From positions 51,274,001 to 51,338,000 of the forward strand of contig NC_043005.1 of the NCBI RefSeq assembly GCF_006345805.1: 64,000 nt of DNA. Reading direction: 5' to 3'. Position numbers and translations under genes: made by a program. The notes beneath the pieces are model-generated. The model had not been told where the DNA came from. It did no database searches and was given only the letters and a program-made list of their open reading frames with translations. This DNA comes from Octopus sinensis (taxonomy: Eukaryota). Within the stretch, counting starts at the first letter, position 1, and each line of letters begins with the position of its first letter. This document shows, piece by piece, positions 5,016 through 48,234 of the stretch.

Positions 5016-5133
5016 CCTTCCTGTGCAATGCAGGGAAAGATGTTCTGCAAGTTTTATGGCATCTGTGCGACGATTTGTGATGGCCATGTAGAATGTTCCG
5101 ATGGAAGCGACGAGAGAGGCTGTGCAACAACAG
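5016..5133 (+). CDS. Exon: LDL-receptor class A repeat (PSCAMQGKMFCKFYGICATICDGHVECSDGSDERGCATT), phase 0-1
   Basis: tttgcag acceptor at 5015, cag|gtact donor at 5134; six Cys and the DGSDE acidic motif. Confidence 0.9.
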
Positions 5134-5630
5134 GTACTGTATATAAATTGATATCTATGTACATTCACATGTGCACGCACACACTCGCACAAACACACAC
5201 AAACACATACACATACAAATATACAGTTTCGTTACCATTGTTCAAATGAAGAAGTGGCCCAAAATTATACATAGTTCTGTCTGCGTGCATGTATGTATGT
5301 ACACGCATGTGTGTGAGTGCGCGCGTGTGTGTGTATTTATGTATTTATGCATGTATGAATATATGTAGATAGATAGATAGATAGATAGATAGATAGATAG
5401 ATAGATAGATAGATAGATAGATAGATAGATGGATGGATGGATGGATGGATGGATGGATAGACAGTCAGCTAGATAGATAGATGGATGGATGGATGGATGG
5501 ATGGATGGATGGATAGACAGTCAGCTAGATAGATAGATATATAGATAGATAGATAGATAGATAGATAGATAGATAGATAGATAGATAGATAGATAGATAG
5601 ATAGATAGATAGATAGATAGATGATAGATA

Positions 5631-7437
5631 TGTTTCTTTATTAGCCACACAGGGCTGCACACAGATAGAACAAATTACAAGGTAGAGCTTTTCTTTTGAA
5701 GGTAAAAAAAATAAAAAATAAAAATAAAAATAAAAAAGGGGGGGTCGATCAAAAGGGATCGTAAAAGGAGAGAAAGAGGACAAAAAAAGGGGGGGGTTAA
5801 AAAAAAAGGGGAAGAGGAAAAAAAAAATGATCAATAGGGATCGTTATCACAGAAATGTCAATATGAAGTGTAAAGGGGAGGACAGGTGAGGTTTACCCGT
5901 GGAAAGAAAAGCCTACGGAAAAGACCACGGTAACCTCGGTCAATGAAGTCACATGTTATATTTCTTTTTTTTTTTTTTGCAAATAAGCAACTCTCTGTAT
6001 TAATTTTTACGGTTCATAGAATCATAGTCAAGGTGGCTTCGTCATTCATACGTGCCATCCTTGCTACATTCACCCATCTTTTTTTAAAACATTCACTAGA
6101 CAAAACTTGCCTCTCTACTCTCACTTTTTTCTTCAAGTGATACTTGAAGAAGTTGATGAGAGATTGACCAGAGAGGAAAGTGTTTGTCTCTAATCCTTTC
6201 AGGCGCGTCCACCAGATACATTCTTTCGCCATAGCCACAAGTATGATAAAAGTAGATCTTCCTTCCCGTTTGAAGGAAGGAGGCGTGACGATATTAACGA
6301 TAGACTCGGCTGATAAACCGACACGTCCCACACGTGACAGCAGTCGTTCGACATAAGCCCACAGGTGGGAAATTGCTGGACACTGCACGATTGCGTGCAG
6401 AGCGGTTTCGTCGCTCTGCCCGCATCTCGGGCAGGTCGGCCCCGTGTTTCTCGAGCCATGCCTATAGAGCTTATCCCGAACGGGTAGCGCTTCTTCGGTA
6501 GCACCGCCAGGCCAGGGATCTCTGGAAGTTGTCCATAGGTCCCGGGCCGAAAGTCGTTTGAAACAGGCGGGTCAGGTATTCCTCGTCGACGCCCAGGTTT
6601 GCCCCGAGCTCGTCGTCGTACCTTCCCTCCACTAATCCCCTATAGAATGCTTTGGTTGTGTTGAAGTCACTCAAGGTCGACCCGGGACGGCAGAGTTGCT
6701 TGAGAGCAACGCGACACTCGCGGTGCCATTCGCCCTTCCTCGGCCTCTTTTTGATCCACGACTGTAGTTCGGTCATGGAGACGAGTTGCGGAAATGCGTA
6801 CCTCACAAACGGCGACCACACCTGTTCACCGTCGTCTACATAGAGCCGGAGATGTCGCAGTCTCAGCGCGTGTCTGCGCATCATCAACCACGGCATGCCC
6901 AGCCCTCCTTTTAACGGGTGTTGACAGCAAATGGATCGCCTGACCATCGGGACGCATCCTTTCCACAAGAAGCGGAAGAGGATGCGTTCTAGTTTGGTGA
7001 TGGTAGGGTCGGGACAAGGTACGACGGTCAGGCGGTAGTAGATGATGGACGCGATGTACGCGTTCACCACCTCCGCCCGACCTTTTAGGGACAGTTTCCT
7101 CTCGGCCCATTGCTGGGCGAGAGTGACCACCCTACTCGTTATCTCGTTCCAGTTCTTCTCCATTTGGAGGTCCGGACCGAACCAGACCCCGAGCAACTCA
7201 ACCGGGCCGTCTGTCCAGCGTCCCACGACGGAGGTACTGGTGGACAGCATGGGCTTGCTTCTCCAGGTGCCGAGCCGCAAGCCCACTGACTTTTCCCGGT
7301 TGATTTTTGCTCCTGTCACCGCTTCGTAGTCTTTCAGTGTCTCGCCGACCCGCTCGATGTGCTCGTGGCTTGACACTATGACGGTGACGTCGTCCGCGTA
7401 TGCAGACACGCTCGTCCCGCATCCCAATTCTCGCGGG
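5631..7437 (-). mobile_element. 5'-truncated L1/Tx1-like LINE (RT C-terminal part, Zn-binding domain, 3' UTR) inserted in a (GATA)n tract
   Basis: YADD motif in ORF 6471-7487; +1 frameshift near 6500, then CPRCG...ET..HA.VQC; AATAAA on - strand at the 3' end; atgatagata on both flanks. Confidence 0.9.
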
Positions 7438-8585
7438 ATGATAGATAGATGATAGATAGATAGATAGATAGACAGACAGACAGACATATAGATAGATTTG
7501 AAGCGTGTTATACGTTAAAAAATTTTCGACCAGATCATCAGATGCTGTTTTACACTTCTAGTCATAATTCTATCTTGAGAGCACATCCTTTTCCATCATG
7601 ACCCAAAATCTTTAACTAAATCGTCTTCTTTTGTGTGTGTGTGTGTGTACATACATATGCGTACATATACATACACATACTATATATATATTTTTCAAGC
7701 GGAATAAGCAACTGTTGAAAGATCGATAATATGGTTCTTTTACAAAAAAAATTGGAAAATTCGTGTGGAACGTATATCACAAAGCTTCTTTGGATATTTG
7801 TTCAAACCCAGGCATGGCACAGTAGAGGCAGACGTAGTCAAGAAGTTAGATAAGGCATCGCAACCAACGCACTCGCAGCAAAATTGGCACTCAACCACTT
7901 CTTCAACGCGAAACACGAATGTTGCGTAGTCAGAGCTAAGACACGTGCTCTTAAGCACGAAGGGACGAAAGTGGAATCGACCAACGATTTGTGGTTGGGT
8001 GAAATTTCAGTATTGAAACTTCTTGAATATTCTTCGAAACACCATCCGATATATGGCAATAGTAAATTTAATTAGTCCCCTATTTTACCAACGTAATCTA
8101 CCCTATGGTCTGTTTACCAAAATCCCCTCTGTAACAAATATTCGAATAACTATATCGCTAGTCTGCTGGATATCTCCTTTCCCCATCACTCGAAAACACC
8201 AAGAACAGTCGTAGTTCTACGCTCTTTCCTCAAACTAAGCCATTATAATCTATTTCTTAAGCACTGTTCGTTGTTATACATAGTGGGAAAATTGCGTATG
8301 GAACAAGTGTCCTTTCAAGCTGAATAAGTCAGTGCCCTGGAAAGAGTGATCGAAGTCATTCACTCACCACTTCACATTAGGCTATACAACCAATCGTTTC
8401 TTGCCTTCTCCTCATAAAATCCTTGCGCTAGATTTAACTACTGATCACACGTGTTGACTGCTATGCAACAGTCCATGACAACGAGTTTCAAACAATTGTA
8501 ACAAAAGTTCTCAGTGCATAACGTTTCTGAAACGATTCTCACACTGAATTATTGCAAATACACGTCTTATCATTATATTTTTCAG

Positions 8586-8618
8586 CACCTGAAGCTACTC
8601 CTACACCACCTACATCAG
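8586..8618 (+). CDS. Putative 33-nt micro-exon (A)PEATPTPPTS, phase 1-1, with non-canonical GC donor; may be a dead exon
   Basis: attatatttttcag acceptor paralogous to that of the 10007 micro-exon; Pro/Thr-rich frame; donor reads AG|GCTTTT. Confidence 0.5.
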
Positions 8619-46068: not shown

Positions 46069-46379
46069 GTAAGAGAATATGGCTGCTTCTTCCTTTGTTC
46101 ATTTATATCTTAGGATAGGGGTGTTCAAACTTTAGGACACAAAAGGACCATTACGTCCTGGGAAAGAGGCACAGCGCGCCAAATGTGAGATGAACAGCAG
46201 CCTGATTTCCATCAGTTATAATGGCAAACCTGCAATACAGGTGGTTGGTTGCTATTTACTTATAAAGATGAATACGCATTGTGAATTAGTACAAAATGTG
46301 AAAATATATATATATTAAAAAATATTCGTTTACTGAATTCAGATTTGATCCAAAAAATTTCATGTTAAAGATACGTTCT

Positions 46380-47620
46380 GGTTAACTCTTTGTAGCAACC
46401 AGATATTCTGTGGCCGGTTTCAGATTGCGTAAATCAGCCAAACTCAACAGAGGTTGTGAATGTGCATTACTTAGTTTTGAGTGCAGACTTTTTTCAATCT
46501 CCATCAGTGTTGTTTTTAAGCGGAACCTTTCGCTACTTTTAGAATGTTGGTTGAAGTGATTAGCAAACTTCGTCCGTCGTCTCACGAGGATCTTCCTTTC
46601 TCTTGGAATCTTGTTCCTTTTTGTGTTAGCTTTGTGCTCTGGGATATATATCTGGCATATGGCTTGCATAACAGACCTGAAATATTCTAGTTTCATGCCA
46701 ATGTTTGGTGTGGAGAGACATTTCGGCCAATCCTGTCTGAGGATCTCTTTTTGGATCGATTTCCAGTCTAGTTTGCGGAAGTTCAGATTGGAGAGATTTT
46801 GGGTGCTTCATTTAGGCTGTATGTCTCTGGCTACTTTTGGCCCAGACATAGACAGCACTATTATGTTGTGATCCTAGATTAATGTCAGCGTCACTTTCAC
46901 ATCATGAACGTTGTTCGTATTGCTTGTAAAGCAGAGATCCAAAATGTTATTGGCCCTAGTTGGTCTGAGTACTACTTGCTACATGAATAGGGCATTGGTG
47001 AGATTGAGCAAGGACACCACCTAAGCTTGTTTGCAATGAGTCATTCCTGAGAGCATCAGGCCTTCGGACCATTTTACATTGGAGAATTTGAAATCACCCA
47101 TAAGAAATATGCCCACGTGGTGTTCCAGTCTCATGAGGATTTCTTTAATGTTTGTGAGATAATCTTTAAACTTCCCTATATGGTTTGGAGCATACGGTGG
47201 GCGATATGTATTGCATATGACTATATTGTGTTGTCTTATGTATACAATTAGAGTGTCACATACTGAATTTGAGTATGACAGTAAGACCTGGGGTGTGAGA
47301 GTATCACGGATATATACAACTCCACCATCGCTCCTTTCCCTTCTGTCTGTTCGCAGTATAGTATATTTTGGTACGTGTACTTCTGCATCCTCTATATCAG
47401 GGCTCAGATGAGTTTCCACGAGTGCTATGGATAGGGCTTACCTAGAACATTCATCGCGGAAACAGAGATCGTTTTACTTTTGCTTTAAATAATTACCAAC
47501 TTTGCAATTCTACCAGTCATTACTCGGGGTGTAATCGGAATGTCAGCTTTTCTTTTCCTCGCGCCTGCCGAACTTATTGACACCAAATAAATTCTGTTTT
47601 TGTTCGTTTTTTGTTTTTTG
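46380..47620 (-). mobile_element. Degenerate CR1/L2-like LINE fragment (AP endonuclease region) in the last intron
   Basis: ETHL.PDI.DAE...P.YTI.R.DR..R..GGV..YIR and MGDF.F..V.W motifs. Confidence 0.82.
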
Positions 47621-47944
47621 TTCCGGGACACCTTTGAATTAACATTCTCGGTTTGACTTTCCCGCTTTCTTTTTGCTTTGTTTTTTAATCCAAACCTAGA
47701 ATATAAAAACCTGATTTAGTTAATGTGTCCTATTTTAAGACGACAGCGTGTTATTTTAAGGAAATTTAGATACTATTTCTAGCAAAGTGCTTGCTTCCTA
47801 AAGCACTTTCATTGTCCTCTATCATAGTCATAAACCACCATCACCATCAATCACCTGTATCATCATCACTGTCATCGCTATTACCAGCACCGCTACTCCT
47901 ACAACGACCTACACCTTGTCTTTGTTTTTGTTTTGTTTTTATAG

Positions 47945-48234
47945 CTGTTTGCCAGCTTCGCAGTCGAGTTGGTTACATCACAGACAGTGCTGGATGCGCA
48001 TCTGATAACATAGCTGATACATCGTACTGTAGTGGTCTCTGTGGAGAAAGCTCTTCGGTGCCGAGACTTATGGAAGATGCAAACGGTATCATAACAATGA
48101 CTAATGACTGCAAATGCTGTACAGGTAAAACTGGATCTCAAATTTCGGTGCCGATGACATGCGCAAATGGCTTGAAAAAGACAGTATACGTCCGTCCGAT
48201 GGTTTCATGCAGTTGTAATAAATGCATGAGTTAG
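47945..48234 (+). CDS. Terminal exon: C-terminal cystine knot (CTCK) with 11 Cys, stop TAG
   Basis: ttttatag acceptor; C-x14-C-x10-CSGLC...CKCC...C...CSCNKC pattern. Confidence 0.92.

Follow-up and report, generated by a model that had tools for sequence, protein, structure and literature searches.

What gene, if a single one, do the exons scattered along the plus strand of an Octopus sinensis locus encode, and is its product a relative of SCO-spondin, of the mucins, or of neither? The window (the whole 64,000-nucleotide stretch of DNA analyzed, positions 51,274,001 to 51,338,000 of contig NC_043005.1) contains a series of such exons that an earlier note, made from the sequence alone, had joined into a gene for a SCO-spondin/mucin hybrid of unusual domain order. 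The explanation that best fits the evidence, to which we give a probability of about 0.6, is a genuine and apparently octopod-restricted gene on the plus strand coding for a secreted modular glycoprotein, with an array of Thr-rich stalks and discoidin-like units that is most likely part of the same transcript and an atypical LDLa-like exon that possibly belongs to it. The core of the protein is secure, and consists of an F5/8-type-C (FA58C) domain, a TSP1 repeat, a pacifastin-like six-Cys module, a second TSP1 repeat, and a predicted C-terminal cystine knot (CTCK). Exon structure, domain content, orthology, and the pattern of selection are observed directly, and the activities of the product are deduced from them.

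The C-terminal half and its orthologue

The exons were rebuilt on the plus strand of the window, which is AT-rich DNA with microsatellites and retroelement debris (Table 1). Each rebuilt exon has an AG acceptor, and all but one candidate micro-exon have a GT donor. The seven C-terminal exons have AG/GT sites throughout, with junction phases of 0, 1, 2, 2, 1, and 1 that are all compatible, and their splicing generates a single 394-amino acid (aa) open frame with a TAG stop at 48232-48234. The splice sites and phases proposed earlier for the exons from 28537 to 48234 hold, with the same junctions in Octopus bimaculoides; the three exons missing from the original list of open reading frames (ORFs), at 28537, 41229, and 44086, are present in the same order and with the same junction residues in the RefSeq proteins of that species.

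The predicted C-terminal order of FA58C, TSP1, pacifastin-like, TSP1, and CTCK is likewise upheld, with Pfam scores above cut-off for all but the cystine knot, which falls just short. The terminal F5_F8_type_C domain (PF00754), spliced from two exons, scores 31.8 bits (gathering score, 28.2) over profile positions 5 to 114 of 127. TSP_1 (PF00090) is matched twice, at 44.8 and 35.4 bits (cut-off, 21.6), and the two repeats have six Cys each and carry the motifs WSEWSPW and WSEW. Pacifastin_I (PF05375) scores 37.5 bits (cut-off, 27.9), and the C-terminal exon has 11 Cys, including CxGxC and CC motifs. The sequons NAS, NCS, NST, NLT, NIT, and NKT and the WxxW motifs listed previously are all there.

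With the protein assembled from the C-terminal exons as query, one close relative is found, the O. bimaculoides protein XP_014786394.2 (280 aa), annotated as "SCO-spondin," which is 84% identical across the TSP1, pacifastin-like, TSP1, and CTCK modules. An older RefSeq model, XP_014786394.1 ("SCO-spondin-like," 319 aa), has an identical exon order and identical junction residues from the 28537 exon on, and the orthologue is also present in UniProt as A0A0L8FVX9, under the name "CTCK domain-containing protein" that it bears in UniRef. The architecture had been thought to match no named gene, but its C-terminal 280 to 319 aa are already annotated as SCO-spondin(-like) in this sister species; the extension by the discoidin/Thr array, most likely as part of one transcript, is new.

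The corresponding O. bimaculoides locus (chromosome CM046610.1, fetched with a 10-kb flank 5' of its annotated gene; here L001) is colinear with the window at 84 to 92% nucleotide identity, introns included, and the order of discoidin units, FA58C exon, and TSP1 through CTCK is syntenic. Conservation between these two species was dropped as a test of exons, the introns being as conserved as the exons, and was replaced by preservation of frame, splice sites, and Cys, together with a more distant third species. The 14 C-terminal splice sites and the frames are intact in L001, the sole coding indel is 3 nt, and about 900 nt are free of stops and frameshifts in either species. The C terminus is 11 residues longer in O. 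bimaculoides, ending in CMNNANQISQTVG where the window's protein ends in CMS and the stop codon, owing to a 5- to 6-nt indel at the stop (window 48226-48234 versus L001 ~22805-22845). Farther downstream, window ~55000-63800 is colinear with L001 28110-35929, where O. bimaculoides has a minus-strand gene with a product matching PF14945 (LLC1), so synteny continues beyond the 3' end of the gene.

For the pacifastin-like module, PF05375 is also in the precomputed Pfam list of the orthologue, and a PDB sequence search aligns the module core, QDCNTCTCHRGVIACTRKAC, with trypsin inhibitors of the pacifastin type from locust (1WO9, 2VU8_I, and 1KJ0/2F91; QDCNTCTC..G...CTRKAC). The published pacifastin motif is Cys2-Asn-x-Cys3-x-Cys4-x(2-3)-Gly-x(3-6)-Cys5-Thr-x3-Cys6, with the reactive site between the last two Cys (PMC2689174), and the octopus module satisfies it as C-N-T-C-T-C-HR-G-VIA-C-T-RKA-C. 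With the locust SGPI-1/SGTI inhibitors (1KJ0, 2F91, 2VU8, and 1WO9) it has in common the motif C-N-x-C-x-C-x2-G-x3-C-T-x3-C and, between the last two Cys, the Thr-Arg-Lys of the Cys5-Cys6 loop, which is kept in O. bimaculoides. It differs from the pacifastin family in that the octopus protein has a single domain without dibasic processing sites, as well as in the position of Cys1 (see below). According to a 2026 study, the pacifastin-like domains of molluscs are frequently extended at the N terminus and occur within multidomain matrix proteins (PMC13388995); the octopus module likewise sits inside a multidomain matrix-type protein, like the "ancestral" multidomain class described there, and as such domains have already been reported in molluscs, the feature falls in a known category. 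VWC was rejected as a label for the six-Cys module, since its score (22 bits; cut-off, 27.6) makes it a weaker match than Pacifastin_I. Also set aside were the first matches of the PDB sequence search, designer PPR proteins, which are low-complexity artifacts without any significant individual stretch.

The array of Thr-rich stalks and discoidin-like units

The upstream part of the model is a tandem array with a unit length of 1610 bp. The three exons of a repeat unit are a Thr-rich one (phase 1-1) and two domain exons, the first in phase 1 to 0 and the second, which runs into a Thr-rich linker, in phase 0 to 1. Every stalk or unit block is phase 1-1, which fits the acceptor of the FA58C exon at 23966, likewise in phase 1. 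The Thr-rich stalks described in the earlier note are real, with stalk exons that are about 75% Thr/Ser/Pro, and Thr accounts for 22% of the whole model. An assembly gap (14595-14694) sits inside the array, and its flanks (14260-14594 and 14695-15029) are 335 nt long and 100% identical, so the gap represents either overlapping contig ends that were falsely joined or left unmerged, or a place where whole repeat units are hidden. The exon that it interrupts is complete to the right of the gap (14732-15080); no part of the model thus has to span the gap, which has no bearing on the reading frame.

The repeated unit of about 125 aa has no Pfam match, PF00754 included, and profile comparison with the terminal FA58C domain gives an E value of only 0.037. 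An AlphaFold model of the unit, of moderate confidence (pLDDT 71.3, pTM 0.68), has neuropilin b1, FVIII C2, the CASPR2 discoidin domain, and CBM32 as its top Foldseek matches, with E values from 2e-4 and a TM score of about 0.6. An exhaustive HMMER search with the unit finds seven relatives in 1.84 billion proteins, one of which is the lamprey "lactadherin-like" protein XP_061433317 (E = 1.2e-5), providing a transitive link from the octopus unit to a canonical FA58C protein. The claim that the repeats are discoidin-like is sustained by these matches at the level of the fold, and the unit is predicted to form a discoidin beta-sandwich. The lamprey protein follows the same repeating logic, with discoidin domain plus Thr/Pro-rich linker iterated three to four times, but its domains are full-size canonical F5/8-C domains (157.8 bits summed over three), whereas the octopus units are below Pfam detection, and it is without the TSP1, pacifastin, or CTCK tail. 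A profile search with this family of reduced discoidin domains finds no named relative, only unnamed fragments of 89 to 171 aa from short ENA or Logan contigs.

Both unit exons are present in Logan contigs of a third, more distant octopod species, at 67% and 61% aa identity and with the same phases and donor position. The exons are 72 to 75% identical in nucleotide sequence and almost gapless (the first exon differs in length by a net 3 nt), whereas the intron between them is 59% identical with 55 gap columns, and dN/dS for the unit is 0.50. The better preservation of the exons and the dN/dS value indicate that the units are real coding sequence under moderate constraint.

Table 1. Exons, exon candidates, and a dispersed repeat family, in window coordinates
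Feature	Position	Strand	Details
LDLa-like exon	5016-5133	+	Phase 0 to 1; AG/GT; 6 Cys; ends ...DGSDERGCATT; possibly part of the gene
Candidate Pro/Thr micro-exon APEATPTPPTS	8586-8618	+	Phase 1-1; noncanonical GC donor; doubtful
Candidate Pro/Thr micro-exon APPTASTT	10007-10030	+	Phase 1-1; strong polypyrimidine tract; GTAAGT donor
First Thr/Pro-rich stalk exon	12966-13031	+	Within the partial repeat unit with which the array begins (12929)
Thr-rich stalk exon A, copy 1	13238-13420	+	Phase 1-1
Discoidin-like unit 1, exon 1	13619-13896	+	Phase 1 to 0; 278 nt; donor position as in third octopod species
Second discoidin-unit exon, left truncated copy	14297-14594	+	Runs into gap 14595-14694; duplicates 14732-15029
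Discoidin-like unit exon 2 and Thr-rich linker	14732-15080	+	Phase 0 to 1; complete copy right of gap
Thr-rich stalk exon A, copy 2	15287-15466	+	3 nt shorter than copy 1, in frame
Discoidin-like unit 2, exon 1	15663-15942	+	280 nt; extra GT at ~15911; alternative in-frame donor GTGTGT after 15910
Discoidin-like unit 2, exon 2 and Thr-rich linker	16342-16690	+	Weaker donor GTTCGT
Third discoidin-type exon, truncated, without partner exon	16902-17069	+	O. bimaculoides comparison
F5/8 type C (discoidin) domain, exon 1	23966-24228	+	Phase 1 to 0; AG/GT, Pfam
F5/8 type C domain, exon 2	28537-28651	+	Phase 0 to 1; ends ...VMGC; present in XP_014786394.1; splice sites conserved
TSP1 repeat a, exon 1 (WSEWSPWSNC...)	34724-34802	+	Splice sites, Pfam, orthologue
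End of TSP1 repeat a and N-terminal part of pacifastin-like/VWC-like module	41229-41459	+	Splice sites, Pfam, orthologue
Pacifastin-like module core (C)TCHRGVIACTRKACL	44086-44132	+	Donor CTCA/GTAAGT; Pfam, PDB sequence search, orthologue
TSP1 repeat b, one exon	45910-46068	+	Splice sites, Pfam
C-terminal cystine-knot exon	47945-48234	+	11 Cys; TAG stop included; Pfam Cys_knot below cut-off; UniRef name of orthologue
Repeat of ~170-210 bp, example copies	1611-1770, 12110-12320, 18222-18440, 20958-22030, 33404-33870, 39966-40190, 42691-42903, 49274-49590		

One gene, two genes, or a decaying one

Several results count against a single intact gene that includes all of these parts. The Pfam Cys_knot match is below threshold (22.0 bits against a cut-off of 24; E = 2e-4), and in the pacifastin-like module the nearest free Cys upstream is 43 residues away from Cys2, rather than the 9 to 12 residues that the motif prescribes for Cys1; this spacing may match an "ancestral class with N-terminal beta-hairpin extension" (PMC13388995). 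The resources searched yield no transcript or peptide evidence for the gene: no spliced product from the window's species is found among 5.8 billion proteins with either C-terminal or N-terminal queries, and the N-terminal query (LDLa, unit, and FA58C) has no homologue in that set. The O. bimaculoides models start at or inside the second FA58C exon and have neither the first FA58C exon nor the Thr/discoidin array, such that the sole annotated models, XP_014786394.1 and XP_014786394.2, span the downstream part only. This would be expected if the locus held two adjacent genes, the first mucin-like with Thr stalks and reduced discoidin domains, and perhaps the LDLa-like exon, and the second coding for FA58C-TSP1-pacifastin-like-TSP1-CTCK with a small signal-peptide exon of its own somewhere in 17100-23965. 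The 7.3 kb of repeats and transposon debris that separate 16690 from 23966, the weak GTTCGT donor of the last unit followed by a relic exon, and the lack of any homologue with both parts point the same way. Nonetheless, we consider two genes unlikely. The FA58C exon at 23966 opens at a phase-1 acceptor and has an open frame without an ATG, phase 1 is what every stalk exon delivers, and the order of the parts is kept in two species. Moreover, the O. bimaculoides assembly has gaps at L001 4334-4433 and 8530-9463. They affect the discoidin array and FA58C exon 1, the second gap hiding that exon except for its first ~29 nt; the sister-species models are truncated at an assembly gap, which is sufficient cause for absent upstream exons, and it is plausibly due to these gaps that the RefSeq models begin where they do and lack the array.

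Other objections arise within the exons themselves, and of the full exon model first proposed the C-terminal half stands, whereas in the array the second unit is frameshifted and the third is truncated. Exon 1 of unit copy 2 is 2 nt longer than that of copy 1, and use of the conserved donor leads to stop codons; the extra GT could be an assembly error, or be bypassed by the in-frame donor after 15910 or by skipping of the unit, which would keep the frame since unit blocks are phase 1-1. The third-unit exon ends at the same truncation point at the orthologous place in O. bimaculoides, and is probably a relic or a skipped exon. These lesions, a near-neutral dN/dS of 0.84 between the two octopus species for the C-terminal coding sequence (dS = 0.105, dN = 0.089), the retroelement insertion and ~4-kb AT microsatellite in the introns, and the absence of expressed products from the databases would suit a decaying and possibly unexpressed gene, with open frames that are leftovers of recent inactivation. 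This is very unlikely, however, given the long C-terminal frame and splice sites that are intact in both species, the retention of 30 of 30 Cys and 5 of 5 Trp when other residues are 82% identical (P ~2e-3), and the constraint on the discoidin unit relative to its intron in the more distant species. Secreted proteins that evolve fast typically combine a near-neutral rate with Cys positions that stay fixed, and the pattern here is that of such a protein with a fixed disulfide scaffold rather than one of clear decay. The 5' end of the single-gene model is more questionable, as the LDLa-like exon and micro-exons might lie outside the gene, belonging instead to another gene upstream or representing an ORF that arose by chance. 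Ldl_recept_a (PF00057) scores 21.9 bits against a cut-off of 24.1 and over profile positions 21 to 37 only (the second half of the domain), Cys3 and Cys4 are 3 residues apart where 6 is typical, the next secure exon is 7.8 kb away with a LINE fragment between, and one micro-exon lacks a GT donor. The LDLa-like exon is also not found in the O. bimaculoides flank, but this is uninformative, as the flank covers only 10 kb and the exon is ~23 kb upstream of the matching point (exon 28537). For the model as a whole, neither a start codon nor a signal peptide was found, and window 1-5015 offers only unconvincing candidates for a signal-peptide first exon (e.g., 2088-2162). The LDLa-like exon has clean AG and GT sites, six Cys, a DGSDE motif, and a phase-1 end (...CATT) that fits the phase-1 Thr-rich exons downstream, and we lean, if only mildly, toward including it. 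The similarity of the O. bimaculoides flank to window 3700-4760 comes from microsatellites and SINE-like elements and was discarded as evidence of synteny.

Relationships, predicted function, and repeats at the locus

The octopus protein has module types in common with vertebrate SCO-spondin, the Reissner-fiber protein, namely FA58C, TSP1, VWC-like, a candidate LDLa, and a probable CTCK, and both are secreted glycoproteins (by prediction for the octopus). It is nevertheless not a SCO-spondin, and the RefSeq name is a best-hit label rather than a statement of orthology. SCO-spondin has EMI and VWD/C8/TIL domains, ~25 TSP1 repeats, and ~10 LDLa repeats; Pfam scans of domain pieces from every exon class found, in a model with an incomplete 5' end, reveal no EMI and no VWD/C8/TIL, and the octopus protein has two TSP1 repeats and at most one atypical, sub-threshold LDLa. 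There is no sequence relationship to the SCO-spondins of other animals past generic TSP1 matches: beyond the octopus orthologue, the C-terminal query finds weak matches at 23 to 33% identity, two of them "properdin-like" and two unnamed, with only TSP1-type domains by Pfam. The combination of modules was not met outside the octopus orthologue in database searches, and related domain exons are present in one further species only. An O. vulgaris skin-mucus "SCO-spondin-like" protein, A0A7E6F2Q3 (LOC118764670), was considered as a proteomic link and rejected as a different and much larger protein, and the accessions of the orthologue appear in no searchable paper.

With the gel-forming mucins and von Willebrand factor the protein has in common Thr/Pro-rich stalks, presumably O-glycosylated, and a probable C-terminal cystine knot with 11 Cys, and the pacifastin-like module also matches MUC2, weakly. 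It has a PTS region as gel-forming mucins do, but none of the N-terminal VWD D-assemblies in the exons found, and so no basis for head-to-head multimerization; its stalks are broken up by discoidin-fold domains, whereas those of gel-forming mucins are interrupted by CysD. With the defining features of both families absent and the nonorthologous matches weak and TSP1-type only, the proposal of a SCO-spondin/mucin hybrid is not supported. Nor is the suggestion that the product polymerizes, as no VWD/C8/TIL is present in any exon found and only CTCK-type dimerization can be deduced; the expected product is dimeric and not a polymer of the mucin type. The C-terminal order of VWC-like module, TSP1, and probable cystine knot is common to the CCN family (IGFBP-VWC-TSP1-CTCK), but the exons yielded no IGFBP module, the scores for TSP1_CCN (16.3 bits; cut-off, 27) and VWC (22; cut-off, 27.6) are too low, and the C-terminal query has no CCN match.

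From these modules we infer secretion, glycosylation, dimerization, ligand binding, and protease inhibition. The cystine knot would link two chains by disulfides, tail to tail, and the Thr-rich stalks would be heavily O-glycosylated and extended, presenting discoidin-type domains with sugars, lipids, or matrix as possible ligands. Further contacts with the matrix may come from the TSP1 repeats, which have WxxW motifs that suggest C-mannosylation, and the pacifastin-like module, with the Cys-Thr-Arg-Lys-x-Cys loop that is canonical in locust trypsin inhibitors, may inhibit trypsin-like proteases. The product would then be a dimeric cross-linker or agglutinin and not a gel-forming polymer. A bolder and distinctly unlikely version is a disulfide-linked dimeric "tethered inhibitor-lectin" of octopus mucus, saliva, or egg matrix, in which a mucin-like stalk bears reduced discoidin domains and anchors a functional pacifastin-type trypsin inhibitor (P1 Arg, P1' Lys). 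Only octopods would have this set of modules, its rapid evolution would be driven by pathogens or by predator-prey conflict, and the ~125-aa discoidin unit would be a new and unnamed subfamily known only from unannotated short contigs.

For annotation, these results correct and extend cephalopod gene models, as the "SCO-spondin" entry of the sister species is a truncated and misnamed model of a larger, apparently octopod-restricted gene, which gene callers miss because of the tandem array and assembly gaps. The gene is an example of rapid exon shuffling, with stalk and unit blocks that are all phase 1-1 and with discoidin, TSP1, pacifastin-like, and cystine-knot modules in one secreted protein. 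For the pacifastin family, it is a concrete cephalopod case for the recent claim that mollusc pacifastin-like domains occur in multidomain matrix proteins. It reveals no new mechanism or fold, and its function is deduced from its domains.

The introns and flanks contain a variety of repeats and mobile elements. Just 3' of the LDLa-like exon is a (TAGA)n microsatellite of 66 copies (window 5366-5630), followed by a GC-rich island with a 338-aa ORF on the minus strand (window 6471-7487) that codes for a reverse-transcriptase fragment (RVT_1, 27 bits, just under cut-off) and is probably a LINE remnant in the long intron after that exon. The intron after the 28537 exon has a 2.4-kb insertion (window 28716-31087) that is absent in O. 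bimaculoides, where L001 10072-10074 joins directly; by its ORFs, with motifs similar to those of reverse transcriptase (RT) and a weak GIY-YIG match (18.6 bits), it looks like a Penelope-type retroelement. ORFs on the plus strand at window 1-1200, with RT-like (DVISLFTSVP...) and GIY-YIG-like motifs and no Pfam match at E<=0.01, suggest a second Penelope-like element at the start of the window. The intron between 34802 and 41229 is 6.4 kb here and 1.7 kb in O. bimaculoides, and contains ~4 kb of (TA)-rich microsatellite (window ~35300-39500; GC 9 to 25%) that reads YIYIYI in all frames. Many copies of a ~170- to 210-bp repeat with 70 to 90% identity and the translated motif GGELAE.LA.RAKCL..F......SEFKF..GR are present in the window and in L001, and these presumably constitute a SINE/MITE family scattered through the introns.

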